A stretch of DNA of 64,000 bases from Amoeboaphelidium protococcarum X5. Taxonomy: Eukaryota > Fungi > Aphelidiomycota. The notes under the pieces are model-generated. The model saw nothing but the letters and a program-made list of their open reading frames with translations, ran no database searches and was not told the DNA's origin. Position 1 is the stretch's first letter. The number at the start of each line of letters is the position of its first letter. The position numbers were made by a program, and so were the translations under genes. The stretch is taken from assembly GCA_023515725.1 (NCBI GenBank), contig JALDTO010000098.1, positions 708,164 through 772,163 of the forward strand, in the 5' to 3' direction. Below are positions 2,124 through 51,318 of the stretch, one piece after another.

Positions 2124-3037
2124 ATGATATTCAATTGTGTCCTGTCCTTAGTTTTGCTTTAATTTGTATTTTCAGTTGATTTTCCGGTTGATTAGATTAA
2201 TTAGTTTCTGGATGCTGTGGATCAAGAGCCTGCGCGCCTTAATGTCGCGTTATAGTAGGACGTTGGCAGGTAGTTGATGGCTCTACCGCCTCAGAATGGT
2301 ATATGCGTTACCAATCGCTTGCTTGAATTAATCTAAAACACACGCGTGTCTGATCATTTGTACGCGCTATTCGTGGGTATAGCAACTTCTGGTGCTGGTA
2401 GAAATGCTCGCATCTATATCATTGACGTTTTGAAAACGCTTCGCCAGACCCGTGATGTCTAATGGACGCTGCGCTGTTTGGAAGACGGTGTTTGTCGTTT
2501 ACCATCTTTAAGGCGCTACTGGGAGCTACTGCTTGCTAAAGATTCAACAAGTTTAGCCTTGTACTGGAATTAAATAATGCCTACGTTTTTGATTATGATG
2601 GCTTTGCTCATGAGATTCTCTAATCGCCCTTTGAATGCGCTAGCTCAATTGCTCGTCTCCACTCTATACATCTCCTTTATTTTGTATACGACATTACTCA
2701 CTATGAAGATAGATCTTCCTTATAATCACGACGAACTTGTTGTAATTGCGCGTTTAATGTAAATGAATCTGGTGCTGGTCGTGATTTCTATTTCTGAAGC
2801 ATTATGGATTGGAAATGAATATATGCATGACATGCGCAGAAGGCGCGCATTAGGTATTCCGCAAGGTCTTTTCAATCGGAACAACGAGGTGATTTATGGT
2901 TATGGCACCTCATTAACCAGATTGCATGTTAATGACCATTTTGTTGAATCCCATGTTTTATCCGCCGAAGATGAGTGCTTATTATGCAGGAAAGAGTTTG
3001 AAGCGTCAGAGATTGCGAAACGTCCGAGATGTAATAA
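2124..3037 (+). pseudogene. RING-finger paralog 2, truncated mid-RING by the tyrosine-recombinase element
   Basis: Colinear with 682..1785 (e.g. VNDHFVESHVLSAEDECLLCR identical). Homology stops at RPRCNK where the element begins; the frame reads into the element to TGA at 3131. Confidence 0.8.
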
Positions 3038-5796
3038 AATGCTCTTATTGTTAAAAGTGCAAAGTGCAAAAACGGAAACCGTTAAGGTTGACGTTGGAAG
3101 AATGCGCGAGCGATCGAGCGCGCGACGGTGATCTCGCAGAAAACAGACAAGTCAGTTGTTTCAAACAAATCCTCAATGATTTTGCATTAAACTTTTTGTA
3201 TTAAATCCACTTTCAATCTCAGTCTCCATATTATCTGTCTTGTTCAAATACTACACTCATCCATGGTACCAGAGCAATTGTTTGTCTTGAAGCTAGTTGG
3301 TTTGAAGTTCCCCCAATGTGCGATGAACTTATCCAAATCACCGCCAAAGTGCTTTCTCAGACATTTCATGATCGGGCAGTATTGCTTCACGTAGAATGAT
3401 TTGGCGCCAGCTGATAACCCGACGGTTGAGCCAGGATCATCCACTGCAAGAATGGCCTCCAACTTCGCCATGGCAGTCTTCGCTTTTCTCACTTTCTCTC
3501 TCCCAGGCATATCATTCACAACTTCATCCTACTGAACAGCTGTGATGGCAGGTACAACATCAGCTACGTCAGTGTCTTCTTCATCGGATTCATAGAGTTC
3601 ATCATCAGAGTGAACCGCAGCTTGTTCACGTAACTATCTGGAAGAAGATTATTGAGAAGTCAGAGTAGATTTTGGCTACTTCAACTTAGCTGATTGAGTG
3701 GCAGCAATCAATCCATTCGCATAAAGCTCAAGCATCCTACGCAGCTCATTAATCTCCTCCGGAGTGGCATTAGGTGCAATTTCTTTCAACTTTGCCTCAA
3801 TAAGCTGCAGCACAGTCTCTTTCTTCTGCAACTGGAGAAGTGCATCGTAAATCACTCTAGGTCCACCAACTGCATCAACATCAGATAATCCACATAAGCT
3901 ACGAACAATCTCTTGACTCACCTGCTGCAGACAAAAATTGCCTCTAGAATGGGCAGCATTCAGACTGCGAGCCATCTATAGCTACTCACAGTAGGCTGAT
4001 CTGAATTTGCTTACCACGGAAGACACGTCCAAACGTCTAGTCTTCGCTAATTCTAGCAAATAGCTAGCATCCTTCTTATACAATGCGGCATTAGCGGACG
4101 AAGCGTGTCGCGCACTCTTAGTGATGTCAATCTCTGATCCCATTCCCCAAACAGCAAGCAAATAGCCAGTCTTCCTACTAGTGTGCGTACCAAATTTACC
4201 ATCGGGATTGCCGGTAGCAATCTTACAAGCTTTCTGATACTGCCTATGATAAGATACGTAAGAGATGTTGTACGCCGCATGCCCAACTTGCTTCACAGCA
4301 TCCAGTGTACTCTCTTGAGGGAACAAGAATCCAGTTCTAATCCCAGAAATAAAAATCCACGTCAAAAGCGCACGAACCGGGCACAATTCGGGCACATCAT
4401 AATCCGTCCAAAGAGTCAAGCACACTCTAACACGATCAGACTTGCCTTTAATGTAGAAAGCAAGGGAAGATATACTGCCATCACTTTGAAAGGTCGCAAG
4501 ATCCTTGTTGAGACAATTTTCCAGCCTAGGATCATGAATTTTCAAATCGGTGACTTCATCATTGCGCAGAAATAGCTTGATACTAACGATAATCATCGTC
4601 CACATCATGAATGACTTCGCATCATTTTTCGAGATGAAATACTCGCGGAGACGTAGTAATTCCCAAGGTGTGAGCGGCTAGCTGCCTTCGGACACGTAGC
4701 TGCATCCATCGCGGGAGTTCAATCTCTACATGTTAGTCATGAGGGAAGAATTCTTTGGATCTCCACCCAGCCAAATACGAGGAGCCATCGGATGGAACCG
4801 ACAGCCAGATCTATCACCACGCTCAGAACGTTGGATGCACTCTTCGCAGATATCTCTGTACTCCCCCCTCTAATTACGACTATCATGCAGCACAGAGACA
4901 GCCGATAACAACTGGTCAACATTCTGTGGCATATTCCAACCACCCTAGCACTTGATATCGTGCCCATAGACACATTTCACAGCGTTGCCATTCTCGTCTT
5001 TTAGCAAAGAACCCTTCTCATTACGCTTGAACTTGATAAACAAAATGATGCTCTTGGCGTTCATTGACGGTGTGTACTGCGGGGGGTTAGGAAGCAGCAT
5101 TAAACTCGAGCTGTAGTCACCAATTAGCGCAAAAAAGTACCGCAATCCTCTGTAATGCTTCTAGTAGGCTTACATACTATTCACAGCCAAAGGCCTACCG
5201 CCAGTGAGTGGCACAGATACGTCGGATCGAGTCAACCTCAGCAGCTTCAACGTCTCTCCAATGCCTTCATCCAGCTTATACTTGTACGCCGCTTCAATGC
5301 GATACACATGGCTGTTCTCCGACTTCTTGCGTCTCTTCACCTTCTTCGCCAACTGCTCATCATCCAGACCATCATCAGAGTCGTAATCGTCGTCGTCATC
5401 TTCATCTTCATTCTCCAGCTACCTATTGAAAGCAGCACTGACTTGAGCAGAACTTTGTGAAGTGATATCAGCAGTTTGATTCATGCTAACAACACTTGTT
5501 TCAGCCTCGCACCCAGCCAGACCAGAACTTGAGGAGGCGGATACGCCGACACTACTGCCAACACCAGCACACTCATCAACGGCTGGGATGCCAGTACTAC
5601 TGTTGGAGGTGGTGATACCACCTCCAGATGGCTACGAGTCACTCTACACTGCTCTAGAACGCTTCCTGCCAGACATGCGAGACGGTCGAGATTGTAACAA
5701 AGCGAGTTCGGTGCGTTTCTCCGGGTGCAAGGTGCAAAACACTACCGGTGCAAAAGAAAACAAGCGTTTTATTTGTTTTAAAAGAGTCAGATACAA
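3034..5796 (-). mobile_element. Crypton-like tyrosine-recombinase DNA transposon, copy A
   Basis: 3038..5796 is the reverse complement of 48556..51314 (2759 bp; paired ORF coordinates all sum to 54352). Termini on the element strand are TTGTAT and TTTTAT. No long TIRs, LTRs or reverse transcriptase. Confidence 0.9.
3244..5676 (-). CDS. Tyrosine recombinase of element copy A, 810 aa
   Basis: Single table-6 ORF with catalytic R-K-HxxR-H-Y signature: LFLRNDE, KGKSD, THTSRKTG, SARH, ALYKKD. Confidence 0.88.
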
Positions 5797-5968
5797 ACAA
5801 TTATTGATGGATTTGTTTTACATGCTTCGAAATGAATCTTACTACGGGATAAAAACACGGTCCTAGTCCTAATATAAAAGTCAATGGCCAAATGACTATA
5901 CTGTAACCAGTCTTAGTCATCTTTGATGTTTACGCGCTTCGGTTGAATGAATTTTATCATCTTTGCTC

Positions 5969-6053
5969 GTTCTCTCTCTCTCTCTCTCTCTCCTTGTCGC
6001 CTTTTAACACGCTTATTCATTCATTCATTCGTTCGTTCGTTCGTTCGTTCGTT
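5969..6053 (+). repeat. (TC)n, (TTCA)n and (TTCG)n microsatellites upstream of ABCE1
   Basis: Directly visible tandem repeats. Confidence 0.8.
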
Positions 6054-6231
6054 GGATATCAAAGAGACTTCCCTTTCGGCTTTCTCTCAATTGATCTCTC
6101 TTTCATTTCGGCCAATTCTTCTTCATTCCTTTTAGCAATCTGCGTGCGCGCAATCTCTTTTAGAACTCTTTTACTCATCATTTGTTATACTAAGCTGTAA
6201 AAATAATAGTATCAAAAATACTTTAGATATA

Positions 6232-8040
6232 ATGGGAGAAGATAAATTGACGCGTATTGCTATCGTGTCTAATGACAAGTGTAAGCCTAAGAAATGCAAG
6301 TAGGAGTGTAAGAAGAGCTGTCCCGTGGTGAAGATGGGTAAAATGTGCATTGAGGTATCACCCACCTCCAAGATTGCATTCATATCCGAGACTCTATGTA
6401 TTGGTTGTGGTATCTGTGTGAAGCGATGTCCGTTCGAGGCTATTCAGATTATTAATTTGCCCACTAATTTGGAGAAGGAAACCACCATCAGATACTCTGC
6501 CAATTCATTTAAACTGCATAGACTGCCCGTGCCCAGAGCTGGTCAAGTTCTCGGTCTGGTTGGTACTAATGGTATTGGCAAGAGTACGGCGTTAAAGATT
6601 CTCGCTGGCAAGTAGAAGCCCAATCTGGGCAGATATGATGATCCACCAGAGTGGTAGGAGGTGTTGAAGTACTTTCGTGGATCAGAGTTGTAGAATTATT
6701 TCACCAAGATCTTGGAGGATAATTTGAAGGCCATTATCAAGCCGCAGTACGTCGATAGTATTCCTAAAGCTGTGAAGGGTAAGGTGCGAGATATTATTGA
6801 GAGCAAGAACGAGAAGGGTGACATTGATTACATCTTGGACATGCTGGAGCTGAGAGATGTTATGGACAGAGAGGTGGCTCAGTTGTCTGGTGGTGAGTTG
6901 CAGAGATTTGCTATTGCCATCTGTTGTGTGTAGAAGGCTGATATCTACATGTTCGATGAACCCTCATCATACCTGGATGTTAAGCAGCGTCTGAATGCCG
7001 CCAAGGTTATCAGATCCCTCCTCACACCGGACACGTATGTCATTTGCGTGGAGCACGATTTGTCCGTTCTTGATTATCTGTCCGATTACGTGTGCTGTCT
7101 TTACGGTGTACCGTCCGTGTATGGTGTGGTCACTCTGCCGTTTGGTGTGCGTGAGGGTATCAATATCTTCTTGGATGGTAAGGTGCCTACTGAGAATCTG
7201 AGATTCAGGGAAGAGAGTCTGGTGTTCAAGATTGCGGAGACTGCAGATGAATTTATTGATGATAAGGTGTCTGCCACGTACAATTATCCTAAAATGAGCA
7301 AGAAATTGGGTGATTTCAAGCTGGATATTGATGCAGGTCAGTTTACAGACTCTGAGATTGTGGTGCTACTTGGTCAGAACGGTACGGGAAAGACTACCTT
7401 TATCAGGATGCTTGCCGGTGCTCTGAAGCCTGACAACAATGCGGATGAGCTACCTCGTCTCAATGTCAGCTATAAGCCGCAGAAGATTTCGCCAAAGTTC
7501 CAGGGTACTGTCAGAATGTTGTTCATGTAAAAGATTCGTGGTGCCTGGCTTTAACCTCAGTTCTAGACTGATGTGGTCAAGCCCATGACTATAGAACCGA
7601 TTTTGGATCAAGATGTGTAGCTGTTGTCTGGTGGTGAACTCTAGCGTGTGGCTTTGGTGCTCTGTCTCGGTACGCCGGCTGAAATTTACCTGATTGATGA
7701 ACCTTCTGCTTATCTTGATTCTGAGTAGCGTATTATAGCATCCAAGGTGATTAAGCGATTCATTTTGCACAACAAGAAGACTGCGTTCATTGTGGAGCAC
7801 GATTTCATTATGGCCACGTATCTGGCAGACCGAGTGATTGTCTATGATGGTACTCCTTCGGTGCACGCTCATGCTAACACTCCGCAGAGTTTGCTCACTG
7901 GAATGAACAAGTTCTTGGAGAGTCTGGAGATTACATTCAGACGTGATCCAACCAACTATAGACCAAGAATTAATAAGGACCAGTCGATTAAAGATAAAGA
8001 GTAGAAACAGTCTGGTAATTACTTTTACATGGATGAATGA
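6232..8040 (+). CDS. RLI1: ABCE1/RLI1 ribosome recycling ATPase, 602 aa
   Basis: [12 protein letters not shown]...[16 protein letters not shown] Fe-S domain, two ABC domains ([26 protein letters not shown]). TAG/TAA fall at conserved Gln positions; ends at TGA. Confidence 0.97.
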
Positions 8041-8289
8041 GTTCATTGAGGTGTCTGCTGCAGCAGTATGAACATTAACGTCATCTTTGATAATAACTAA
8101 GAGTAGTGATAAAAGTAGTAGGTAGTAATTATTATAAAAAGAAGAGAGCTTGATTACCAAATTAACGATTTATTACACCAACAAAATCCATTTTCATCTC
8201 CTTATACTCATATACCACCACCACTTCATCGACTAATTTCCATCAACACCAACCTAAATCGTCTACAATAATCATCCACAAAGGTATAA

Positions 8290-10239
8290 TCACTGAGACT
8301 TCTGGGATGCAAAGACATTAGACAAGTAAGCCTCATAGTCATAAGCATCTTCAGCACCGTTCTGAGCCTTTGGCATCACAGTCTTCAAGTAATCAATCTA
8401 CTCAGCTGGCACCTGACCTTGACGCATCTGCAGCTCAGTAACAACGCCGTTATTACTCTTGGAGATGGACTGGAAAGACTGACGCAGCTGCTCGACAGAG
8501 GTACGATCCTCAGTGATGCTGACCATAAACTTGGAGAACTGCTCAAAGGTCAGGTAGTCGCCATTGTCGTTCAACTTCTTGAACAGATCAGTCAGTTCAT
8601 TGTCGTCGTAAGCCTTACCCAAACTAGCCAGACAAGCCTTGAACTCGTGGAATTGCAGAGTGTTGCTGTTGTTCTTGTCGAAAGCCTTGAAAGTGGTCTC
8701 AAACTCCTCCAACTGCTGAGGAGTGATGTTGGTCATATTACGAGCCACCACCTGATTCTCAATGAAGGCAATCTTCTTCTGACAAGCCTGCTGTACCAGC
8801 TGGAAATCAAACTCCAAATCTTCAACGCTGAACACAGTGTCCTCACGCTCACTCTCTTCAATACCAGCCTGGTCACACTGCTCATCTGCAACCTTGATCT
8901 GGTCAAAGCTCTAGTTCAACCCGGTCACCTTCTCGCTGATCTGCTTAACCTGCTCCAACTGCTGTTGCAAGTCACCATCCAAATTACCTAGACTCTGAGA
9001 GATCTGGTTCAATTCACGCTCAAATGCATTAGCCAGTTGAGCATAGTTGGAACGCAGATTGTACTTGATAGCAGCAATCTTCTCGTTGATAGCCTTACGT
9101 CTCACACCTTCACTAGTAAGTAGCTGATTCCAGCTGTTGTCAACATCAGTCAGAGTTAGGCCTTCAGGTGGGTTATAAGCAGTCAGGTTGTAAGTTCTCA
9201 ACTTGGTCTAGATGTTAGACAGCAGAGTGTCCAGATCACGCTTCTCAGCAACCCACTGACGTTTCTGAGTGTTCTTGTACTCCTAAAACTGGTTGGACTA
9301 CAGCTTGGCATCAGCATAAGTATCATCAAAAGAGCTATTCTACCATGCAGAGGTAATATCAGCAATCGCTCTGATGAAAGCACCAGCACGACGCTCATAA
9401 TCATTCTTCATATCCCAAGTAGCCTTCATGACATTGGCAAACTTTCCAACACGACGACCGGCCACCTCTAAAGAGTCCAACTTGGAGAAGGCGTGGAAAT
9501 ACTGAGCAACATAAGTCATCACTGAACGCTCATCAGGCTTGGTAATGTCAACCAAGTCCTCAACATCGAGCAACTTAGGGATACCAAGGTGCTATTCAGC
9601 AATATCGAAAGCCAACTGCACATTTTCCTTCTTGTTGGACTTACTCAGCTTATCGAAATCCAGCAGATCTGGGCGATGACGATGAATGAGAGCACACAAA
9701 GCCAAACCATCCTACCAACTGAAGGTGAAATCACGCACATTCACATTCTTGTAGCCTTGAGTCTTACGCTGGCACCAGAGCAGAAGACCTTCCTTGGCAG
9801 ACAGACCCTCTTCACTAATCTCAGCGATGGTAAAACGCAGAATGATGGTCCAAACCATACCAAGCACCAGCTTCTCATTCTTATCCACCAAGTCTTCAGC
9901 ACCAATATTGGTCAGATTGACACCATGATTCTTGATAAAATCCAAAGCCTTATTCATGTTTTCACACTTTTACACACGCAACTTTGGCGCCTTGTAGTAC
10001 TTGCCAATATCCTCACCACCAATAATTTCCAGCAGGGCAATCAGCTTGGCACCGTCAGAGAATTCCTCAGCCATGTTCTCGATTGGGTTCATCTTTCTCT
10101 TTTACAGCTGAGAGTTGACCCACTTGGTGAAAGTCTTGCGCTGCACAGTCTCCCACTGTTTGTCCATCAATCGACCACCAGCCTTCACTCCAGCAGGGGA
10201 AGCAGTGTCATTCTACGTTTATAAATCAGCCTGAGACAT
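8290..10239 (-). CDS. Alpha-actinin, 649 aa
   Basis: [12 protein letters not shown] and LLLWCQRKT calponin-homology domains, spectrin repeats, C-terminal EF hands ([14 protein letters not shown]). Confidence 0.95.
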
Positions 10240-10796
10240 TTCGAGTTACTTGTTATCAACTTGCTCAATAATGAATTTAGAATATGCAAAATTACAACTT
10301 TCTATAAGAAGGTAATTATTGTCAATGCCAAAACTAAAAGTGTTTTTTCTAATAGACAGTCACTACTGTTAGTATTGACCTGTGAATAGAGATAGTACTT
10401 GTAATTGGAAGTGACCAGAAACAAAGAGACAAACAAAGAGAGAGAGCGAGAGCCAGAAAGTTTCAATTCGCTCGCTGCGACAAACAAAGCCGTATTTAAC
10501 CGCCGCCCCTTTCATTGGAGCGCCACTTTTTTTGAAACGACGATTCTTCTCGCCTCGCCGGCTTGACAACGTCGATCTATTGCTGCTTTTCACTTTTCGC
10601 ATCAGACGTTGTTTCAACTACTATTGTAGCAGAAATCTTGCTCATTATATGCATAACAGTAGTAAAAGTACGAATACTAAATTTCAATTACAAATTGCTA
10701 TATTCCCTGTTCAAAATAAAACATTCATTCAACATATTGATTTCTCAGCTATCGTATGAATGCTATCGCGTACATCCAGATTGCAAAATCACGAAA

Positions 10797-11792
10797 TCAG
10801 AACATCCTCTGCTGCTGGGCACTTCTAATGCCTTGAGATGATGATCCACCACCACCACCACCGCCCTACTTCATGTGGAATAGAGAACGGTGGTCCTTGA
10901 TAAAGTGGTCCAGCTTCTCTGGCTCTTCCCCAATCTTCTTCTTGGTATCATCACTGACAAAGTTCAGCTTTCCCTTGTTCACCAAATCAAATTCATCCAA
11001 CAGCTCACGTGTCAAAGTCTCTCTCAGACCCAACTGCTCTTGAAAGTAACGCTGAATATGCTGTGGATCAACCTTCTGATACTGCAACTGCAAGCCAACA
11101 TTCTTATTCAGGACATCAACTAGCTGACGAGGAGTTATGATGGTTGGACCAGACAGGCGATACATCTCCACATTGCCGCCACTCTTCAGCTTACGGCTCT
11201 CTTCACCCAGCACATCATTGCAGATAAACTTGACCACATCATGCATATTGATCATGGTGAACTTGGCATCTTCATTTAGCGGCCATTCCAACTTACTGCG
11301 CTCCATCATCATCAGACGGTGCAAGAACAGGGATTGCTGCAGACACACCAGACGGACGATACAGGCATCCTGGAAACCAAACTCGCGGAGACACTTTTCC
11401 ATATTGCAGTAATTCTACGCAGTCTTGTTGTCCTGACCATCAATACCAGCGCGACTGATCAGCATGACGCGTTATACCTGAGACTGATGGGCAGCTTTCA
11501 GAATTAACTTGGTCTAATCCACCATCTTTCCAGTGGCCCAGTCAGGTACTACGATCAGAGTATCGACACCCTCCAAATGCTTTCTCAGCTATCCTTCATC
11601 TGGCTGGTCACCCATTTCAATCACACACGCACCTTTAGACCACAGCAGACCACTACGCTCAGGATGACGGACTGTGCACCATAACTCACTGATCTAGCCT
11701 CTGAACTTTTCATTGTCCAACAGCTCGCACACCACGCCACAGCCCACAGCAGTATCAGCATTCGCCACAAACACTCTTCTCATATTGCTCAT
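10797..11792 (-). CDS. NmrA-like NAD(P)-binding Rossmann protein, copy 1, 331 aa
   Basis: MSNMRRVFVANADTAVG...TVRHPER...GVDTLIVVP...YRLSGPTIIT atypical SDR pattern; near-identical to 20569..21561. Confidence 0.75.
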
Positions 11793-12060
11793 TATACGAT
11801 ATACGATTGATTGTATATTCCAAATACTTTGATCAAGTAATAGCAATAGGAGAGAAAGAAAACCAATGAGGAGATGCAAAGTTATTCATATTGATGCCAT
11901 CAATGATCTGATGACAAACCGGTTTCAAATAGACATATCGGGATATCACTGATAATTGATCACTAAATAATCTATAATAAGGCTTCATGATAACTAATAT
12001 TTAAAATAATTTAGATTGCATCAGTAAGTCTACTCATTTAACTCTCATCACAGTTCACAT

Positions 12061-13371
12061 TCATAGCAGAGACCGGTCGAACGCAATCAAAACGTAAAGT
12101 TGCATGCGAAGAAGGCTCATTTTGGCATTGAATTCATTAATGAAATACGATTTCTATGCTTCCAAAAGAGGATCTTGTCCTTTGAAAGTATACAAGTGCT
12201 TGTTCAGCTTCTTATCTCGTCGTACCGCAATATAGTTTCTAATCCCATTTAGCTTCCCCAAAAGAGGCAAAGATTCAGGTTAAACCTCCTACATATGAAC
12301 GCGCAAAAACTTACTATAAGCCTCAAGGTCTTTTCTGGATTAAGTTGCTGTCAGCACTTGTCCAATATTCAATGTCTTATAACTGAACATCGGACGATTC
12401 CGCCTTGATCCAAACCATTGACTATCCTAACCAGAGAAGTAATTTTGTACAGCAGCAAGGCCGCCACACTAGAGCACGTCAGCCAAGTCTTGAAAGGCAA
12501 ACATCAGGCAATTATGACCATCATGTTGTCGCCGCGCAGTCATCACGAATAACTCATAACCATTCTAGAATAAAGACTACATCACCAGTGGAATATGAGG
12601 CAAATAATCTAATACAAATACAGAGTCACTAAGAAGAGCAATTTTTCTCTTGGTATCGATGGCTAGTAAACTGAAATGAGTGGTATCTGTATTTATAAAA
12701 AAGGCACGAGTCTTTTGACCACTCTCAAGATGTTCACTATCATGGGATACTATTTAAGCCAAGTTGACACGCAAAAATTACAGAGCTTCCACAAAAATAC
12801 CATCAACCTAATCCAAAATACGATTCTTGCGAGAGAAAGCTTTGTACAATAACTAAAGATCCATATCAGAGTATTTACTTAGATTAGGACTTTAGAATAT
12901 TGATGGATCCCTATCAGTGAGAGCTTTTTGTGTACTCAGGTACACTTACTTTTCAATCCCAACGCGGAAATTCGGATTAATAAGAGAGGCACGTAGAAGG
13001 CAAATAAAGATCTCCGGTAGATCGAGCCCTTCCATATCAAAAGACGATCTCTTCACCTAAAGGTACTCTTCAACGCTCACAAGACATCTCTTTAAACCAT
13101 CTGAAGATTTACGCTTCCCATTCTCATGCTCCTCCACCAACTATTAAGCAAAGTGCACATAATCTTTACTATACGCGAATTAGTGAAGCTCTTTTCGAAG
13201 CTGGGCATTATAAAGTCTTTCAGATCGAGCGAAATTCGAAGGCTTTCCCAGCCATTTAATCATCTATTAAGGATAAGAGGTGCGTAATGCAACATCAGAG
13301 GAGCCAGCAACATCTATTAGCAGTATAGCCACTACAAGCATCAAACGCGCGCACCAGTTCAAATTAATCAT
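12061..13371 (-). CDS. Hypothetical protein with predicted signal peptide, about 436 aa
   Basis: No in-frame TGA for 1.3 kb; N-terminus MINLNWCARLMLVVAILLIDVAG. An upstream in-frame ATG at 13467 is possible. Confidence 0.65.
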
Positions 13372-39733: not shown

Positions 39734-39985
39734 GGATTTTGTTCAGTATACAATCATCCAATCCATAATAATTAATGACCGTTAATCACTATTACAGCAT
39801 CAGCTAGTTGTTTAGATAAAGTGAATTGCCGAAGAATGCTTTATCAGAAGCTTTTCATTGTAAAAAAGCATCAAGTAAAGAGAAAGTACAAGAGATATAC
39901 AAGTAGATAACTACACTTCTAGTTACTCATCATCATTTTCAAACACACAAACGCACACACTTTCTCTTCAGATTTGCAAAATCTA

Positions 39986-41491
39986 TCAGTTATCCACTTG
40001 AGGCACTTCAATCTTGATGGGGACAAAATTTTTCAGATCAATACCCTGCTGTGCATATTACTCCCACATCCACTGTGGAACCAGCTTCGGTATCAGATCC
40101 GGTCTTATACTTAGCTCCATCGGAGTGAAGTTGAACAACAACGGCAGAGGCTTCCCATTCGGTAACGTGGTCTCCTACAAGCGCAATTCATCAAAGAAGT
40201 GGTGCGTCATGGCTTCGATAGCAGTGAATCGCGACGTTGGTGTGTATTCCAACAACTTGGCAATTAGTTCTAGGCAATCTGGAGCAGCTCTATTTTTGAA
40301 AACTTTCTACCACGGATTAGCTTTGATAGCCGGAAACTTGAAGTCCGTATAATTCTAATTCATGCTCTTAATCTGCTCCCTGGTCGGAGTGCCAAGAATC
40401 TTTATAATTTCCACCAGCTGATCGACTCCACTTTCACCGGGGAACAGAGGGGTGCCCAGAATCATCTCGGCCATAACACATCCTGCCGACCACACATCAA
40501 TGGCCGGTGTATAGTCAGTCGCACCAAAAATCAATTCAGGAGCTCTATAATAACGGGAGCAGATGTAAGACACATTAGGCTCTCCCTTGATCAACATCTT
40601 GGCACTACCAAAATCACACAATTTCAATACACCTCTTTGAGGATCAAGCAGAAGATTCTGTGGCTTAATATCACGGTGACAGATACCATACGCATGGATG
40701 TATGCCAGCGATCTCAGCATCTAGTAAGTGTACAGCTTTACAAACAGCGGAGGCATAGGCTATTTGAGTTTAGCATAGTGCCTGCAGGCTTTATAGACAG
40801 TCTCTGGTACAAACTCAAGCACCAGGTTCAGAAATACTTCATCCTTCTTGTCTCCATTGGAGTAGAAAAAGTATCGCAGAGAGACAACGTTGGTGTGATT
40901 CAGCATCCTCATAATTTACAATTCTCTATTCTTGAATCTCTTATCCTGGAGCACCTGTTTAATCGCAGTAAGCTCGCCAGTCTGCACAATCTTGGCTTGG
41001 AATACAACTCCGAATGACCCATTACCAACTGGTTTCAATGACGTATAACTCAGATCAACATCATTCCCTGACAAGCCTTCTCTGGCAGGTACAGTGAACA
41101 ACTTGTTAGGATCTACATCAGTTCTAATACCATTGATAGGCTAAGAGGATTGGTGGAAGTGTGATCCAGCAGTCTACGAGAATGGCTACTGTTACTACTA
41201 ACCACCAGTCTTGCTCGAGGCTCTTTTCTACTACCCACTTCCACTGCTACCACCTGCTTGGCTATGACCATAATGATGCTACTGAGGCTGACTATGAGAC
41301 GCGAGCGGTAAAGACGGATTGCTCTACTATTACTGAAACTACAACTGCTACTATTGCTACTATATGGCAATATTGTTTGAGGAGTTAGCTGGTGGTGGAG
41401 CTTTACTAGATAATGATGACGAACTAAAGCTTCCACTACCCGAGGCATTTTAGGCCTGCAGTAAATGTGACTATGGTATCTATTAAGACAT
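39986..41491 (-). CDS. GSK3: GSK3/shaggy-family kinase with Gln-rich N-terminal extension, 501 aa
   Basis: [54 protein letters not shown]. Confidence 0.97.
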
Positions 41492-42556
41492 CTCTATGTT
41501 TACACAATCTGTTAGATGCTACTAAATCGATCAATAAGGACAATGTCTACTCTAATCTTTTAAAAATCCAAGGTCAACAAACTAAATGACACTTTAACCA
41601 GTACACTGACAATTAGGGATTAAAATTCCAAGTGATAACAACTAACCGTTCAATTACAATTCCAGATACTAGTAATTAACCTAGAAATAAAATCAAAGAA
41701 TCTGCAAGTGTACAACTTGGTTGACAAGAAGAGGCTCAGTTTGATGATATCGGCGGATCTATTTATAACAATGCAGCAACTAATTCGAGGTCTTGTGATC
41801 AGAAGAAAATCTACTCAACTCCAAGATTCTATAAAAAATATCAGCAACAATATTCCAATCTATCCACTACCACAAAGTTGACCTTCCACAAGAGTCCCGA
41901 GTACAGTAGATTGTATGTGTACGCACACAGTTGTTTGTTCCTTTGTGCTCTCTAATGAAATGAACGAGAAAGTGGTGAGAAAGTTTTACGCTCGCCTCGC
42001 CGTCGCTCTTTCTCGCGCCGCCTTCATTCTCGCCTTTCGTCAGCAGACCAACACGACGAGCGACGTTGTTGTTGTTGTTCCCGCTTTCTGGTACTGTCTC
42101 ACGTCAGCTCGCATCACATGATGACCCATGAAGCTGCTGATTTTAATTCCATTACTCTCGACGTATATACTACAAGGATGTTATTTTGTTTATCATGTTA
42201 CTTCTTGTTTTAGGCTTTAAGCTAATTGTACCATCACAGCATGTAATGTTGGATGCACATACTGTCACAACTCACCGTTCAGTAGTTGGCAAATCAGATA
42301 TTTTTATCACGGTTGAATACATTTTCAAAGTTCATCCAAATACACTAAACTATCAGATTGAAATTGAAATACTCCATAACGCCAAGATTCAACCATTGAG
42401 GAAGCCGCGTGATCGATCAAGTACTTTTTCATAATCTCCGTTCCCCTGTTTTGAGTGAATACGCGTTCTGTTTCTACCTATTCCATTCTTCTTGAATTCA
42501 TCCTTATCATCTTTCAAAGGAGAATTAAATTAAATAATTTTAAGGATTAAATTACT

Positions 42557-43125
42557 ATGGGTAGTCTTTGGGCAGAAATCTCATCTGGTTCTTTTAATAT
42601 TTATGCATAATGGTAAGATTGTGAGTTTTGGCTCATTCTGAATTTATAAATGCCTCACATTGTCATTTGAATATTAAATTGTAGGCTTGCATTATTGGGC
42701 ATAATATGTAATTCTCCTGTTTTAATTCGTTTTACTCATCATCCCTTCATCAAGAGAATGTCTCACATGTAGTTTTAATTATTGCTGGTATTCTTAATGT
42801 CATTGGAGTATTTATAGTATTCGCCATATTGTGCTTTGTGTTTGCATTTATCGTCCTGCTGCTGGAATTTCCGCTGTTTCGCAGATGCTGTCCGACGAAC
42901 GGTTTCATTGATCAGATTCTGACCAAGGGGGAAAATCACTGGTTCCGATTTGGTCTATACCTGGTGCTGGCCACGGTTCTGTGGCTTCACACGTTGATTG
43001 GCAGCTCTGCATTGATTATCGTATCTGCTCTTGATCTGACTCTTGTCACGGCGTGCTATCTCGTCGCTGCTCTCAGAAAGGAGCCTCATAAGGAGACGCT
43101 TCTCGCTGGTGGTTAGTCTGTTTGA
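42557..43125 (+). CDS. TVP18: Golgi membrane protein TVP18 family (introns 42613..42684, 42708..42772)
   Basis: MGSLWAEISSGSFNIYAQW/LALLG..., LEFPLFRRCCPT; several TM helices; splicing restores the frame. Confidence 0.85.
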
Positions 43126-43228
43126 ATGAATATTGAGATTTGGTGAAAATCGTTTCATTTCAGAGAAAGTGGTAAAGTATAGTTTTATATTCACTTCCAA
43201 CTATATATAATCCGCATTATGACTAATA

Positions 43229-44139
43229 TCATAAAACTCCAGCTTCGCTCTTCAGCTTCTGGATCAAATCATCTACAGACTCAACCTTCTTGCCAGCCTA
43301 TCGTTTAGGAGGTTCTGCGACACTGTTAATAGTCAATTTTGGCTTCAGCTCAACTTTTAAATCGGCCAGAGAGACACTCTTCAATGGCTTCTTTTTAGCT
43401 TTCATTATATTGGGCAGTGTGGCGAAACGTGGTTCATTAAGACGCAAATCTGTGGTGAGCACAGCCGGCGTCTTTACTTTAACAACCTACAATCCTCCAT
43501 CAACTTCTCTGGTTACAGTCAAGTCTTTACCTACAAACTTAATTAAAAGGGGTCCATATAATGAGCATTAAGTCAAATCAAATATATCGGATATAAACAT
43601 ACCTGCAACTTCAACTTTACTGGCAAAAGTAGCCTAAGGCCAGTTGAGCATACCAGCCACCATACCACCAACCTGACCAGCATCATCGTCAATAGCCTAC
43701 TTGCCAAGCAGTAGAATATCAGCCTTCTCCTTCTCAGCGACAGCCTTCAAGATAGAAGCGACACCGAGCGGCTCCAAAGGTCCAATACCGTCAGTCTCGA
43801 CCGGAACGTGAATTGCGTCATCCGCACCCATTGCAAGAGCCGTTCTCAAAGTATCCTGACATGCCTTTGGACCAATCGATACAGCAGTGACATGAGCGGC
43901 CAACTTTTTCTCCTTCATGCGGATAGACTCTTCCAAGGCAATTTCATCAAAAGGATTCATTGAGTGCTTAACACTTGCCGTCTCTACACCTTTTCCATCA
44001 CTTCGCACCTACACAAATAATAAGTTAATCGATCAATAAGCAAGAATCAATATCATCATGTCGTCATTTCCAATCTTACTCTAACTTTAACTGCATAATC
44101 AATTGCTCTCTTGCATCCAACAAGTATACGCAGGGTCAT
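43229..44139 (-). CDS. ETFB: Electron transfer flavoprotein beta subunit (introns 44009..44079, 43531..43602)
   Basis: [61 protein letters not shown]. Confidence 0.96.
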
Positions 44140-44437
44140 TATTATTCAATTTTGATGATTAAATTCAAAAAAATATTCCAAGATTTAAACGCAATAGAAA
44201 GGAAGGAAACGAAAACGCAACGTGCTAATGCTGAAGTTTAACCTGTCTTTAGGCGAACGGGAACAATCTCTCTCGAAAAACAAACGCTCGATTCCATGCA
44301 GAAAATAGACTGCAGGCGATTACAGGGAGATTTAGTCAAAGACGCACAGAGACCAACGCGACCGAAAAAGATTTCATTTAAAGTTCTTCCGTCACTGAGA
44401 GTTTAGATTCACGCGTGTTTGCATTAAACGTTAATAA

Positions 44438-46156
44438 ATGTCGAGTAAATTGGAAGATTAGACTGCGAAAATGTCAGTGAGTGGAGAAAAGTATCCAACT
44501 TTTTATGTGTGCGAAGAGACTGGAGATGATAAGAACGATGGATTGAGTGAGGGGAAGCCGTTCAAGTCAGCTGTTCGCGCGTTGGAGTTGAATGAAGATT
44601 GTCAGAGTATTATGGTGAAGAAGCCTGATGGTTATCAACCTATAGCTGCGAGCGCTCTCAAGAAGGCAAAGAAGCTCCTAGATCTGCAAAAGAAGAAGCA
44701 GGCCAAAGAGAAGGAGCGCCTGGAGAAAGAAGCTGAACTTGCAGCCAGTAAAAGTGCATCTGAGCAAAGTAAATTGGATGATGCTAAAAAGATCACGTTG
44801 ACTGAAGATGCTTCACTTGGTCAAGCTATAAAATTGAAGATCAGTTAATGCGCACAACATCTGGGAACTACTTAACGCGTCAAGGTTTACGGCTGGGTGC
44901 ACAGACACCGTACGCAAGGTAAGGACTTGATGTTTCTGGTCTTGAGAGATGGTACGGGATACTTGCAGTGTGTTATGAATGGTGTGCTGTGTCACACTTA
45001 TGATGCTCTCACGTTATCGCAAGAGTCTACAGTTGCAGTTCACGGTTTGATTAAGAAGGTTCCTGAAGGTAAGAACGCGCCTGGTAACCAAGAATTGGTT
45101 GCCGATTACTGGGAAGTTGTTCATAAGGCTCCTGGTGGAGATGACGCGTTCACTAACCAGATCAGTGAGTCTACGTAGGCTGGTGATATTATCTATAACT
45201 AGCGCCATCTTTTCATTCGTGGTGAGAACGTATCTGCAGTCCTCAAGATGCGTCACTATGTGATGAAGTGCTTTCGTGATCATTTCTTTGATAATCATTA
45301 CACTGAAGTCACTCCTCCACTTATGGTGTAGACTCAGGTTGAAGGTGGATCTACTCTGTTTACACTCGATTATTACGGATAGCCTGCGTACTTGACCCAG
45401 TCTAGTTAGCTGTACTTGGAGACTGCTATCCCGGCACTGGGTGACGTGTACTGTATGGCAGAGTCATTCCGTGCAGAGAAGTCCCTAACCAGGAGACATT
45501 TGAGTGAGTATACGCACGTGGAAGCGGAATGTCCATTTATCACCTTTGAAGATTTGCTGGACCGTATTGAGAACCTTGTAGTGGACACTGTAAACAGAGT
45601 ATTGGCTATTCCTGAGGCGAAGAAGCTGGTTTATGAATTGAATCCCAACTTTGTAGTGCCAAAGAAGCCGTTCAGACGCATGGCTTATAGTGATGCTATC
45701 AAGTGGCTGAATGATCACAACGTGCTGAAGGAAGATGGTTCTCACTACCAGTTTGGCGAGGATATTCCAGAGTCACCAGAGCGTAAGATGACTGATGCTA
45801 TTAATGAGCCTATTCTATTGTGCAAGTTCCCTGCCGAGATCAAGGCCTTCTATATGAAGCGATGTGCAGATGACAATAGATTGACGGAGTCTGTCGATGT
45901 ATTGATGCCAAACGTGGGTGAGATTGTCGGTGGTTCTATGCGTATCTGGGATATGGAAGAACTACTGGCGGGATACAAGCGCGAAGGCATCGATCCATCT
46001 CCTTACTACTGGTTCACTGATTAGAGAAAGTATGGTAGTTGTGAACATGGCGGATATGGTCTGGGTTTAGAGAGATTCCTTGCCTGGATGCTGAATAGGC
46101 ACACTGTGCGTGACACTTGTCTGTATCCTAGATTTGCGGGCAGATGTACTCCTTGA
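44438..46156 (+). CDS. NARS: Cytosolic asparaginyl-tRNA synthetase, 572 aa
   Basis: [30 protein letters not shown] (Q encoded by TAG), [25 protein letters not shown]. Confidence 0.97.
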
Positions 46157-46285
46157 GATGTCTTCTTGTCTCGGATTTGTGAGGTATATATATATATATA
46201 TATATATATAACTTGACAAATGATAATTAATAATAAAACTATTTTACCATAATTGATATATTGTACAAAATGTCATTATCAAAAA

Positions 46286-46958
46286 TCATAATAATCCTTC
46301 TTGCTCCAAGTACTTCACAATCGTAGAGACTGACTGCTCTACTGACTATTTGCCAGAGTCAATACGCAATTCAGGATTTAAAGGGACCTCATACGGATCA
46401 TCAATACCAGTGAAATGCTTAAGGACGCCAGCTCGTGCCTTTTTGTACAGCCCTTTAGGATCTCTACTCTCCGCGATACTCAGTTCAACATCAACATGAA
46501 CTTCAATGAACGGAATTCCGGCCTGTTCATGGATTCGACGTGCACGCTGTCTGTCAACTTCATACGGACTGATGAATGCGGCAATGGCTATAGTGCAAGA
46601 GTCTGCAAACAGCTTGCTTACGTGAGCGATTCTACGTATATTTTCGGATCTGTCTTCAGCGCTGAATCCCAGATTCTCATTAAGGCCCATACGGATATTA
46701 TCACCATCTAATCTATATGCATGCAACTGACATTATTTAACCAGATATTGCTCTAGAGCAACAGCGATTGACGATTTCCCCGCAGCAGACAACCCGGTCA
46801 GCCAAATGGTAAATCCCTACAAGATGTAACAAGTGAACATGTTCAAGTTATATAGAATCGAATAAACTGCGTACCTTTTGCTTTAGACTGCTCTGCCTAC
46901 TCTCGGCAGATATCGCACCCTGATGGAATGTTAGATTATTATTATTACTATTGGTCAT
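46286..46958 (-). CDS. MET14: Adenylyl-sulfate (APS) kinase (intron 46817..46874)
   Basis: [52 protein letters not shown]. Confidence 0.96.
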
Positions 46959-47963
46959 GCTGCGAATGTGTGATTTTCATACAAGACTGCAATGGGAAAT
47001 TGAGATTAGGAGTTGAAACGAGGCGCGATTTAAATGTTGACGCTTGGTGTAATAAGTTTGTTTTGATCGCCGCGACATTCACTCATTTGGAATCATCACT
47101 CAAGAGAAGATTGTGTGCAGTAGTGTACGGTATTAAACGAAGTGATGACCCATCGGTGCTGCTGAGTCAATGCTGCTCACTTTTGTTGTAATTATTTTTT
47201 TCAGTGTAACCGCCTTCTTAAAATTTGGTATAAAATGCAAACAAGCACGTAAGTATATCAGAAAATCTGAGGTTTTCTAAACTCCCATGGATGGAGCGCC
47301 CAATAAATGAAAAAGCTCTTTAAGTTATCGAATTTTGCCTGGCATTATCGATCAGCACAGTGGCAAAAATTGATATCCAATATCTTGGCATCTGAGACTT
47401 TCCGGTCTGAAGTCACGCATTATGCTGAGTAAATGATGATTCCTTTATCATTGATCGGGTGTGTAGAGTCCAACCTGCGATTGATATGGTCAACTGCTCC
47501 TTAGATCAATTTCTGTAAGTCGCTATGCAGCAGCGACTAACTCCAATGCTGCTGATTCCGACTGATATAGGCGGAATGCGTGTAAATATCTGCACGCAGT
47601 TGGAAGAGGTCAAGTACAAGCTGCGATTGTCTGTAGACTAGTTACTAAGCCTTCAGGAACTAGATTTGTTGAGAGACGCGTCAAAATTGTAAATGTGTAA
47701 GAACAGAAGACTGATTGGTTCGTGATTTCTGATGTGTGATCTCTTTGCTGTACTGAAATATACTGTGTTTGTACTTTACTTAGCCTTTCGTTAGTTTTAA
47801 CTTAAACTCTAGTTGGCGCTTGATTTAACAACGCGACTTGTTCACTTCAGCAGGTATGGGTTAGGATTGGTCGCATGTAAGATTGTGTATTATATTAGTT
47901 AGAGATTGACAATTAAAATGTGAAACTATTTCAATCAGAAGCTTTCTGGCTCACAAAATGTAT

Positions 47964-48555
47964 TCATAAGTTGGTCAAAAGCTCATAAATACTCTGCAAC
48001 ACTTGCATAAACTTTGGCTTTCCAGCGAGAATGTCGAGCATCCTCTGTCGAAACTCGTTTCCTTTCACCTCACCACCAATAATGGCATCTTCAATTTAAT
48101 AGTAAATTTTCAAGTGACGTTTGCATGCTACAACATACCGGGGACCATAGCCACCGCAAAGTTCAATATAATCATGCCGGGAAACTTCCTGTGCAACTAC
48201 TGATAGCACACTGTCTGGCTTCTGCATCTCAGTTCCAACAATAGTGACTGTCGCAGTCTCGCATTTCAGCACAGCACGATGAACATCAGGAGAGAATCCA
48301 GGCAAGCGAAAAATGAATGCCCACGACTTTTTATCGCCAGTTTATTGATTAGTACGTGTTGACTCTAATGCTGAAAACACAACAGCACCAACAGGGACAA
48401 TCTGTTTCGCTTTGATATAGTCTATAATTGCATAAGCGCCCTCAAAGCCAACAGATGCACTAACTTCGATGAATTTAGCTCCATCGTCAACCATATGCTG
48501 GGCAGCCACGCACGCTTAATCAATCGTGGACACACCGGTTGCATAAAATACGCAA
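47964..48555 (-). pseudogene. Tandem DUF6506-like protein lacking its N-terminus, cut by element copy B
   Basis: Two repeats of a bacterial-type motif: ...TGVSTIDQACVAAQHMVDDGAKFIEVSASVG...VPVGAVVF and WAFIFRLPGFSPDVHRAVL...IELCGGYGP. The N-terminal part of repeat 1 is absent at the element junction. Confidence 0.65.
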
Positions 48556-51318
48556 TTGTATCTGACTCTTTTAAAACAAATAAAACGCTTGTTTTCTTTT
48601 GCACCGGTAGTGTTTTGCACCTTGCACCCGGAGAAACGCACCGAACTCGCTTTGTTACAATCTCGACCGTCTCGCATGTCTGGCAGGAAGCGTTCTAGAG
48701 CAGTGTAGAGTGACTCGTAGCCATCTGGAGGTGGTATCACCACCTCCAACAGTAGTACTGGCATCCCAGCCGTTGATGAGTGTGCTGGTGTTGGCAGTAG
48801 TGTCGGCGTATCCGCCTCCTCAAGTTCTGGTCTGGCTGGGTGCGAGGCTGAAACAAGTGTTGTTAGCATGAATCAAACTGCTGATATCACTTCACAAAGT
48901 TCTGCTCAAGTCAGTGCTGCTTTCAATAGGTAGCTGGAGAATGAAGATGAAGATGACGACGACGATTACGACTCTGATGATGGTCTGGATGATGAGCAGT
49001 TGGCGAAGAAGGTGAAGAGACGCAAGAAGTCGGAGAACAGCCATGTGTATCGCATTGAAGCGGCGTACAAGTATAAGCTGGATGAAGGCATTGGAGAGAC
49101 GTTGAAGCTGCTGAGGTTGACTCGATCCGACGTATCTGTGCCACTCACTGGCGGTAGGCCTTTGGCTGTGAATAGTATGTAAGCCTACTAGAAGCATTAC
49201 AGAGGATTGCGGTACTTTTTTGCGCTAATTGGTGACTACAGCTCGAGTTTAATGCTGCTTCCTAACCCCCCGCAGTACACACCGTCAATGAACGCCAAGA
49301 GCATCATTTTGTTTATCAAGTTCAAGCGTAATGAGAAGGGTTCTTTGCTAAAAGACGAGAATGGCAACGCTGTGAAATGTGTCTATGGGCACGATATCAA
49401 GTGCTAGGGTGGTTGGAATATGCCACAGAATGTTGACCAGTTGTTATCGGCTGTCTCTGTGCTGCATGATAGTCGTAATTAGAGGGGGGAGTACAGAGAT
49501 ATCTGCGAAGAGTGCATCCAACGTTCTGAGCGTGGTGATAGATCTGGCTGTCGGTTCCATCCGATGGCTCCTCGTATTTGGCTGGGTGGAGATCCAAAGA
49601 ATTCTTCCCTCATGACTAACATGTAGAGATTGAACTCCCGCGATGGATGCAGCTACGTGTCCGAAGGCAGCTAGCCGCTCACACCTTGGGAATTACTACG
49701 TCTCCGCGAGTATTTCATCTCGAAAAATGATGCGAAGTCATTCATGATGTGGACGATGATTATCGTTAGTATCAAGCTATTTCTGCGCAATGATGAAGTC
49801 ACCGATTTGAAAATTCATGATCCTAGGCTGGAAAATTGTCTCAACAAGGATCTTGCGACCTTTCAAAGTGATGGCAGTATATCTTCCCTTGCTTTCTACA
49901 TTAAAGGCAAGTCTGATCGTGTTAGAGTGTGCTTGACTCTTTGGACGGATTATGATGTGCCCGAATTGTGCCCGGTTCGTGCGCTTTTGACGTGGATTTT
50001 TATTTCTGGGATTAGAACTGGATTCTTGTTCCCTCAAGAGAGTACACTGGATGCTGTGAAGCAAGTTGGGCATGCGGCGTACAACATCTCTTACGTATCT
50101 TATCATAGGCAGTATCAGAAAGCTTGTAAGATTGCTACCGGCAATCCCGATGGTAAATTTGGTACGCACACTAGTAGGAAGACTGGCTATTTGCTTGCTG
50201 TTTGGGGAATGGGATCAGAGATTGACATCACTAAGAGTGCGCGACACGCTTCGTCCGCTAATGCCGCATTGTATAAGAAGGATGCTAGCTATTTGCTAGA
50301 ATTAGCGAAGACTAGACGTTTGGACGTGTCTTCCGTGGTAAGCAAATTCAGATCAGCCTACTGTGAGTAGCTATAGATGGCTCGCAGTCTGAATGCTGCC
50401 CATTCTAGAGGCAATTTTTGTCTGCAGCAGGTGAGTCAAGAGATTGTTCGTAGCTTATGTGGATTATCTGATGTTGATGCAGTTGGTGGACCTAGAGTGA
50501 TTTACGATGCACTTCTCCAGTTGCAGAAGAAAGAGACTGTGCTGCAGCTTATTGAGGCAAAGTTGAAAGAAATTGCACCTAATGCCACTCCGGAGGAGAT
50601 TAATGAGCTGCGTAGGATGCTTGAGCTTTATGCGAATGGATTGATTGCTGCCACTCAATCAGCTAAGTTGAAGTAGCCAAAATCTACTCTGACTTCTCAA
50701 TAATCTTCTTCCAGATAGTTACGTGAACAAGCTGCGGTTCACTCTGATGATGAACTCTATGAATCCGATGAAGAAGACACTGACGTAGCTGATGTTGTAC
50801 CTGCCATCACAGCTGTTCAGTAGGATGAAGTTGTGAATGATATGCCTGGGAGAGAGAAAGTGAGAAAAGCGAAGACTGCCATGGCGAAGTTGGAGGCCAT
50901 TCTTGCAGTGGATGATCCTGGCTCAACCGTCGGGTTATCAGCTGGCGCCAAATCATTCTACGTGAAGCAATACTGCCCGATCATGAAATGTCTGAGAAAG
51001 CACTTTGGCGGTGATTTGGATAAGTTCATCGCACATTGGGGGAACTTCAAACCAACTAGCTTCAAGACAAACAATTGCTCTGGTACCATGGATGAGTGTA
51101 GTATTTGAACAAGACAGATAATATGGAGACTGAGATTGAAAGTGGATTTAATACAAAAAGTTTAATGCAAAATCATTGAGGATTTGTTTGAAACAACTGA
51201 CTTGTCTGTTTTCTGCGAGATCACCGTCGCGCGCTCGATCGCTCGCGCATTCTTCCAACGTCAACCTTAACGGTTTCCGTTTTTGCACTTTGCACTTTTA
51301 ACAATAAGAGCATTGTAT
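48556..51318 (+). mobile_element. Crypton-like tyrosine-recombinase DNA transposon, copy B
   Basis: Inverted twin of 3038..5796; bounded by direct repeat TTGTAT at 48556-48561 and 51313-51318 (ATTGTAT including the preceding base). Confidence 0.9.
48676..51108 (+). CDS. Tyrosine recombinase of element copy B, 810 aa
   Basis: ATG TCT GGC AGG AAG to ...ECSI-TGA, open under table 6 with about 15 TAA/TAG codons; intact R-K-HxxR-H-Y residues. Confidence 0.88.

Follow-up and report, generated by a model that had tools for sequence, protein, structure and literature searches.

A probable Crypton-type tyrosine-recombinase transposon, recently amplified in the aphelid Amoeboaphelidium protococcarum X5

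The locus examined in this study raises the question of what kind of element can stand twice in one region, in opposite orientations and on either side of 42.7 kb of host DNA, with its two copies matching at every base. The DNA analysed, hereafter the window, is a stretch of 64,000 nucleotides (nt) from Amoeboaphelidium protococcarum X5 (C98:708164-772163), in an assembly of 23.6 Mb in 346 contigs. It is very probable that both copies belong to an autonomous Crypton-type DNA transposon with a unit of 2757 bp, which was recently amplified and whose sole gene encodes an 810-amino-acid (aa) tyrosine recombinase (YR) in a genetic code where TAR stands for glutamine.

A repeat search of the window found inverted arms of 2763 nt at 3034-5796 and 48556-51318, and direct comparison of the two gave an exact inverted match of 2759 nt (copies A and B; Table 1). 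The four nt outside this match, which hold one mismatch between the arms, are flank and represent a target-derived core. The initial annotation had described two reverse-complement copies of 2759 bp, each with one intact 810-aa open reading frame (ORF) that the standard code would break into six or more pieces, and all of this was borne out. The ORF contains thirteen in-frame TAG and two in-frame TAA codons, is open to a single stop only if both are read as glutamine (translation table 6), and falls into 16 pieces under the standard code. Standard-code annotation misses the gene, which fills 2433 of the 2759 bp, or 88% of the element. Both copies are real and neither is an assembly duplicate, because each has its own junctions: the junction of copy A at 5797 coincides exactly with the start of homology to another contig (C264), and the left junction of copy B was seen in the contigs of the source run, where a contig of unique flank extends 28 nt into the copy.

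The stop-free piece of 231 aa that holds the catalytic domain was found to have 700 relatives (cluster representatives) in a library of 1.84 billion proteins, with a best identity of 44%. In an alignment of 25 of these relatives, domain residues R38, R190 and Y200 (R371, R523 and Y533 of the protein) are invariant, and K79, H165, R168 and H191 (K412, H498, R501 and H524) are at least 90% conserved, which upholds the R-K-HxxR-H-Y signature (R371-K412-H498-R501-H524-Y533) first read from the element alone. An alignment-based AlphaFold model of the domain reached a predicted local distance difference test score (pLDDT) of 96.6, whereas the single-sequence model was useless (pLDDT 36). Foldseek matched the model to XerH and Cre with a probability of 1.0, and VIA-align gave Z scores of 17.4 for Cre, 16.6 for XerA, 16.0 for XerH, 15.5 for lambda Int and 10.2 for Flp, with weaker scores for Ndc10 (8.9 and 7.1) and QRICH1 (8.0). 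The catalytic domain is therefore confidently predicted to adopt the Cre/Xer/lambda-Int fold, and the 810-aa protein would, to judge from its sequence, be capable of catalysis. A local phmmer comparison of the table-6 translation with full-length relatives showed homology over residues 140-808 (E about 1e-135), and the architecture of the whole protein is thus conserved. The columns of the W-H-CxxC-CxxH motif in the N-terminal domain show no or almost no variation among 30 full-length relatives and, together with the conserved cysteines and histidine of the C-terminal domain, they look like two putative zinc-binding modules. No Pfam match was found for either of these flanking domains, nor anything meaningful for six pieces of the ORF, and searches of PDB sequences found no match for either flanking domain, nor with profiles of the catalytic and C-terminal domains.

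Table 1. Positions of the features of the element and of the host segment in the window
Feature	Position	Strand	Details
Crypton copy A	3038..5796	-	2759 bp; ORF 3244-5676 on the minus strand
Crypton copy B	48556..51314	+	2759 bp = 2757 bp + TT shared with target; exact copy of 3038-5796
Element-borne core TTGTAT(C), left end	48556..48562	+	constant in 24 of 25 left junctions
TTGCAC direct repeats (three), left end	48599..48627	+	element positions 44, 60, 67
Recombinase ORF, 810 codons	48676..51108	+	ATG 48676; TGA stop 51106-51108
W-H-CxxC-CxxH motif, N-terminal domain	49414..49560	+	W247, H264, C277, C280, C292, H295
Predicted tyrosine-recombinase catalytic domain, residues 334-564	49675..50367	+	R371, E374, K412, H498, R501, H524, Y533
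Conserved C-terminal domain	50824..51105	+	C772, H776, C801, C808 (C-x3-H...C-x6-C); alignment of 21 relatives
Polyadenylation site	51169..51172	+	about 64 nt after the stop codon
TTGCAC direct repeats (two), right end	51283..51295	+	element positions 2728, 2735
Right-end TT and target-derived core half	51313..51318	+	GTAT in copy B; consensus DTAY
Host segment S, 42.7 kb	5797..48555		collinear with C264:1385090-1426980, 84-92% identity

The ends of the element were defined from an alignment of 25 left and 23 right junctions. These share a common pattern in which the flank reads R-T-A, followed by five variable bases, TTGTATCTGAC and the element, which closes with AAGAGCATT before a flanking D-T-A-Y. 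At flank positions -8 to -6 of the left side, R occurs in 25, T in 24 and A in 25 of the 25 junctions, and D-T-A-Y follows the right end in all 23. Large blocks of the window have collinear second copies elsewhere in the genome (5797-47646 on C264:1385090-1426980, 51315-54314 on C207:156991-159981 and 1-3037 on C158:99646-102859, with 84-98% identity overall), and these homeologous copies served as empty-site controls. Such large blocks fit a genome that is duplicated or hybrid, and also the report that some genes of A. protococcarum come in quartets about 91-93% identical (PMC10608142). Three clean empty sites were found, each with a single TT at the insertion point. The first, on C158, is 98% identical to the left outer flank of copy A (flank X, 1-3037) and reads ATA-TATAC-TT-TTA-T. 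The second is provided by intact units of a 150-bp repeat (the R repeat), which read ATA-TTGTA-TT-TTA-T and in which copy L009 carries the element exactly at that point. The third lies in a contig of run X8 with the left flank of copy B, one TT and then ATACCGTGA..., which is the right flank of copy L015. As the empty sites keep a single TT, one TT is shared with the target and the unit proper measures 2757 bp; the rule for the target reads RTA-N5-TTDTAY. The 1451-bp tandem paralog next to copy A was also considered as an empty site and was dropped as too diverged to resolve.

Short direct repeats at the termini are part of the classical picture of Cryptons (PMC3212892). They had also been claimed for this element, and the claim stands in the form of TTGTAT on the left against TT plus DTAY on the right in 23 junctions; in an R-repeat insertion, put together from the left junction of copy L004 and the right junction of copy L006, the match is a perfect 6-bp direct repeat of TTGTAT (6/6). 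The core of the element was always observed at the left junction and the target variant always at the right, with none of the 25 reversed. Since two staggered exchanges across a mismatched spacer would give both outcomes, we infer, short of proof, a single effective crossover point at the TT. The retention of the core fits such a single crossover, for example one strand exchange resolved by replication, which could also explain the gain of copies. The 105 terminal nt (72 on the left and 33 on the right) also contain five TTGCAC repeats where about 0.03 would be expected (Poisson P about 1e-10). A relative with 42% identity on metagenome contigs of the Joint Genome Institute (JGI), among them the 5473-nt contig L065, ends in ...TAAGAGCCCT followed by TTAT or ATAT; this end resembles that of the element, and the design of the right end is therefore conserved. 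No match to the left-end pattern of the element was found in the metagenome contigs.

The R repeat is about 150 bp long and occurs in at least nine copies that are 82-96% identical (L051, L054, L056 and L060, e.g. C233:294171-294320). It begins with TGTAAGA and ends with TCTCACA, which resemble short terminal inverted repeats (TIRs), and its centre, ATATTGTATTTTATCC, contains two overlapping Crypton target sites. Four Crypton copies (L004, L006, L009 and L027) adjoin R repeats. The relative on L065 lies in a transposon-rich context, flanked by a Phage_integrase-family gene and a MULE-type transposase gene.

At the DNA level, the genome was found to contain at least 21 assembled copies with a length of 2575 nt or more, eighteen of them spanning element positions 1-2759 and three more spanning 2-2759, 23-2759 and 185-2759, together with eleven terminal stubs of 69-76 nt at contig ends (six left and five right ends). 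Among the 19 full-length copies compared, fourteen are identical, and the sequence of copy B is shared with 13 others. The remaining five carry T177G, a synonymous change (GGT to GGG, Gly19), to which one of them adds T1C, and these are the only two variable sites. A protein search of the genome returned the same 21 copies, one paralog with 40% identity and three decayed remnants. Contigs ending in the element are C132, C235, C94, C68, C264, C164, C160, C186, C177, C213 and C138, and the tiny contigs C319, C129, C109 and C210 duplicate flank sequence at 99-100%.

Copy number was also compared between samples by using Logan contigs of four runs, in which each contig has one k-mer depth rather than read counts. 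In the source run the element reaches a depth of 3297, whereas the unique left flank has 85 and an identical right-flank contig 98, a ratio that corresponds to 34-39 copies. Another sample with the same organism label (run X6) has a depth of 160 against about 100-120, or about 2 copies, with two distinct left junctions and an element three substitutions away from the source version. In a 2013 biofilm metagenome the depth is 38 against 7-16, or about 2-5 copies, with ten substitutions in 2763 nt. Insertion sites that are filled in X5 were found empty in the homeologs and in run X8. The recent burst proposed in the initial annotation from two identical copies is thus supported by at least 21 copies that differ at two sites and by the contrast in depth, and a strain-specific recent amplification to about 35 copies is supported. 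The left flank of the copy at C179:511881 occurs in all four runs; this copy is therefore probably an old one, common to all four samples. Copies A and B are not a special pair, being two ordinary insertions. In run X6, the sequence in front of one left end of the element, before window position 48555, reads ...GTGCACTCTGAACAAATAGAGCA; it resembles the right end of a diverged relative and suggests a head-to-tail placement beside another family member.

The element also appears to be transcribed. A 595-nt contig of run X8 spans 50596-51172 and continues with eighteen non-templated A residues where the genome reads AAAA and then TCATT, which shows a polyadenylated transcript end of the element. 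Run X8 dates from 2021, is of unstated kind and belongs to a study that comprised four samples from another organism; our guess is that it is linked with the 2021 dual RNA-seq study of an alga infected by A. protococcarum (PMC8657485).

Several points weigh against the reading of the element as a recently amplified, mobile Crypton. A pattern search for the circle, or head-to-tail joint, found no match in its own assembly or in the JGI metagenome contigs, and none was seen among the loose contig ends displayed from the four runs. Contig ends at 69-76 nt suggest a de Bruijn-graph assembly with k=77, which can erase private single-nucleotide polymorphisms (SNPs), and the perfect identity of the copies is thus an upper bound on their similarity; the contrast in copy number between samples is independent of such an assembly, whereas the perfect identity may not be. 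The depth figures in turn depend on a single value per Logan contig. Run X8 is not labelled as RNA and its poly(A) end comes from one contig.

The flanks of the two window copies raise a further question of chromosome structure. Beyond segment S, contig C264 is on one side 90% identical to contig C138 from base 71, where C138 starts with the last 69 nt of the element, and on the other side 90% identical to the right flank of copy L015 (C207). Run X8 contains the adjacency of the end of S, TT and the right flank of L015 as an empty site. This collinearity and the adjacency in run X8 together give an ancestral order of C138 flank, copy A, S, copy B and L015 right flank. By these alignments S is in its ancestral place and copies A and B are separate insertions whose left ends face S. 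In the assembly, the outer flanks are X at copy A and Y (51315 onward) at copy B. X is partnered by the left flank of the C200 copy and Y by that of the C157 copy, whereas the inner flanks of copies A and B have their partners in C138 and in the right flank of the C207 copy respectively. All four flanks of the window copies thus have their true partners beside other copies, and a fifth copy (L001) is without a collinear partner. A simple inversion between copies A and B was rejected as the cause of these mismatches, as four separate loci elsewhere supply the partners of X, of Y and of the two ends of S.

Two explanations for the mismatched flanks are held to be about equal. There is an even chance that they are assembly misjoins through the perfectly repeated 2.76-kb node, with the true chromosome collinear with its homeolog. 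The break points of eleven contigs lie 69-76 nt into the element, and contig C157 begins 73 nt outside, as is typical of a graph assembler with k=77, and every junction tested is a simple pair of one flank entering and one leaving the element, as plain insertion predicts. Mismatches at four of the four window flanks, together with the partnerless L001, would also be a high rate for biology. However, a graph assembler will usually end a contig at an ambiguous path instead of guessing, and 21 copies are traversed inside megabase contigs. Only slightly less credible is a real exchange of outer flanks between copies, either recombinase-mediated or homologous, by which the burst would have reshuffled the karyotype. 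Here X, Y and both ends of S pair with flanks of other copies, and the homeolog on C264 is collinear with the order C138, S, L015 right flank. The 2.5-Mb contigs running through several copies suggest that long-range data were used in the assembly, and the active Crypton of Chlamydomonas gave rise to inversions between copies in opposite orientation and to translocations whose breakpoints carried copies (PMC9977147). On the other hand, misjoins across an exact repeat of 2.76 kb would give an identical pattern, and at least two cycles of at least three copies would be needed, with several translocations completed before any mutation in the copies. If the exchange is true, about 35 identical copies reshuffled the chromosomes of this strain within a very short time. 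For users of the genome, the identical copies mark where either the assembly or the chromosomes themselves are rearranged.

Other readings of the copies and of the window fare far worse. It is improbable that the copies owe their identity to gene conversion between old elements or to assembly collapse, and not to a recent burst. Collapse in a de Bruijn graph can indeed hide private SNPs, but the copy number itself differs between samples, sites filled in X5 are empty in the homeolog and in run X8, and the versions in the other samples are only three and ten substitutions away. Even less likely is a composite transposon, or a segment moved recently, made up of the two copies and the 42.7 kb between them. 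The homology to C264 does break off exactly at the end of copy A, as that reading would have it, but C264 continues collinear past both ends into sequences that flank other copies, and the segment is 84-92% identical to its homeolog while the copies are identical to each other; this collinearity with the homeolog led us to rule the reading out. The least probable reading of all takes the element for a family of host or domesticated recombinase genes, or for a piece of a DIRS/Ngaro or Starship-like element, as the annotation of the relatives only as hypothetical proteins is outweighed by sharp 2759-bp boundaries at more than 20 loci, by polymorphic insertions, by an ORF that leaves no room for another gene, and by the lack of any match to reverse transcriptase (RT), RNase H or DUF3435, in an element with a single ORF, no terminal repeats longer than 6 bp (in contrast to DIRS/Ngaro), a size of 2.76 kb and no cargo (in contrast to Starships).

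The preferred reading of an autonomous Crypton is in agreement with the features of this class in the sense of Goodwin 2003, as the element has the intact catalytic set, a short terminal repeat that matches the target, and polymorphic multicopy insertions. The absence of RT, DDE transposase, long terminal repeats (LTRs) and long TIRs, already remarked upon from the window alone, held up in the Pfam search, the repeat search and the ORF content, which together revealed no other transposase either. The position of the element within the class is less clear. Searches for GCR1_C (PF12550), the mark of CryptonF, were negative for the C-terminal pieces as well as for 21 C-terminal domains and 30 full-length relatives, and no match to DUF3504 (PF12012), the mark of CryptonA/Glomhopper, was found in the element protein or its relatives. 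By these defining domains the element is, as far as its sequence tells, neither a CryptonF nor a CryptonA. It is plausible that it represents an undescribed Crypton lineage, given the hypothetical or generic names of its relatives and the lack of GCR1_C and DUF3504, in a comparison that covered Pfam domains and the protein library. A tentative and rather doubtful extension would be a Crypton superfamily that has no name yet, spread over zoosporic fungi, aphelids and some protists, with two conserved Cys/His modules where others have GCR1_C or DUF3504 and with one member active now. Nothing relevant on Cryptons in aphelids or chytrids was found in the literature searched.

Named relatives occur in the chytrids Zopfochytrium, Blyttiomyces, Physocladia, Quaeritorhiza and Rhizoclosmatium, in Plasmodiophora and among paralogs of A. 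protococcarum itself (34-35% identical and annotated as hypothetical), whereas most of the remaining relatives lie on metagenome contigs of 2.3-5 kb. Every name retrieved for a relative was 'hypothetical' or generic. Protein searches started from one full-length relative and from a profile of 30 sequences each returned at least 11 proteins. A quick maximum-likelihood tree was poorly resolved and placed the element among aphelid paralogs, chytrid and metagenomic sequences. The genome also has a second Crypton-family gene, in single copy at C264:1093693-1095996, whose product is 35-40% identical to the element protein. It matches the NCBI protein MP228_004128 of A. protococcarum with 95% identity over the full length, when fifteen in-frame TAR codons are counted as mismatches, which points to this species or a very close strain but to an assembly other than that of MP228; the 90% cluster of MP228_004128 has 14 members and may be multicopy elsewhere. 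Proteins of A. protococcarum at NCBI carry two locus-tag prefixes, MP228 and MIR68. Short Crypton-family fragments were observed on C264, C212, C155 and C257.

A close parallel is CryptonF-1_cRei of Chlamydomonas reinhardtii, an active element with CACCG at its end and CAYCG as its target, which increases in copy number and is a source of inversions and translocations (PMC9977147, Lopez-Cortegano et al. 2023). Both are YR-only elements with a core at one end and an almost identical degenerate target (CACCG/CAYCG there, TTGTAT/TTDTAY here), and the ends and target of the Chlamydomonas element fit the same one-sided core arrangement. Both also rise in copy number and are found as inverted copies and at real or apparent rearrangement breakpoints. 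They differ in host kingdom, in core sequence and in the accessory domains of the protein, and activity was seen in mutation-accumulation lines in Chlamydomonas whereas it is deduced here from the comparison of strains. With the fungal CryptonF elements (Crypton-Cn1 type; Goodwin 2003; Kojima and Jurka 2011, PMC3212892) the element shares a holomycotan host, a single YR ORF and 6-bp terminal direct repeats. NDC10_II matches were also found in several relatives (7/25 and 4/30), all below the threshold of Pfam (best E 3e-4), and Ndc10/Cbf2 has been described as derived from CryptonF (PMC3212892). Unlike CryptonF, the element has a C-terminal C-H-C-C module and an H/C-rich insertion in the N-terminal domain in place of GCR1_C. 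CryptonS elements of oomycetes and a diatom (PMC3212892) likewise lack GCR1_C and have their own conserved C-terminal region and terminal repeats of 5-6 bp. When compared by description, however, their hosts are stramenopiles and most of them end in TATGG, as against TTGTAT / GAGCATT here. The CryptonA/Glomhopper elements (PMC13465315) are YR-only DNA elements, some of them in fungi, but the present element lacks their DUF3504, and QRICH1, itself a DUF3504 protein, is structurally only a distant match (Z 8.0, compared with 17.4 for Cre). The prokaryotic tyrosine recombinases Cre, XerA/XerH, lambda Int and Tn1549 Int share the catalytic fold and the full set of catalytic residues, and they act on a site with inverted arms around a 6-8-bp spacer, as is proposed for the element; the element differs from them in an identity of only 10-19%, a eukaryotic setting, the extra Cys/His modules and a target whose identity is limited to TT-TA-Y.

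The protein consists of an acidic Ser-rich N-terminus, a conserved N-terminal domain with the H/C-rich insertion, the Cre/Xer-like domain and the conserved C-terminal C-H-C-C module. A mechanism may be proposed in which the element would form a circle whose joint reads AAGAGCA-TTGTATC-TGACTCTT, a lox-like arrangement with imperfect inverted arms AAGAG(T)CA around a core of 6-7 bp, and the five direct TTGCAC repeats around the joint would probably bind an accessory DNA-binding domain. The recombinase would join the circle site to chromosomal RTA-N5-TTDTAY sites, with the crossover at or next to the TT, such that the core of the element stays on the left and that of the target on the right. From the old C179:511881 copy of all four samples, the family would then have risen to about 35 copies in X5. 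The circular intermediate, the position of strand exchange and the way in which copy number rises are what we infer from the ends, the empty sites and the copy counts.

The element offers a rare natural case of an apparently active Crypton. As stated in the 2023 Chlamydomonas study (PMC9977147), a single organism is the only one where activity of Cryptons has been seen directly. Assets for bench tests, also on how Cryptons gain copies despite excision, are the contrast between strains with about 35 and about 2 copies, ends that are known to the base, a target rule of 14 bp, a candidate recombination site of compact size, and an intact and expressed recombinase.

A tandem duplication at 725-3039 of the window (period 1451 bp, units 73-86% identical) has a 436-codon ORF (475-1785) in its first unit, and in the second unit the ORF (2124-3131) continues into copy A at 3037/3038; copy A therefore appears to truncate this gene. 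On the other side of S, a host frame on the minus strand (47964-48869) extends 314 nt into the left end of copy B, which places the insertion at the 5' side of the host gene. Within S, an inverted duplicate (10787-11942 and 20426-21571, arms 90-97% identical and about 8.5 kb apart) has a 330-aa protein ORF in each arm (10797-11792 on the minus and 20569-21561 on the plus strand), and both products look like NmrA-type NAD(P)-binding proteins. The ORF at 13715-16147 also has exactly 810 codons, but it was rejected as a relative of the recombinase, as it encodes an unrelated low-complexity protein rich in Ser and Gln and the equal length is a coincidence.

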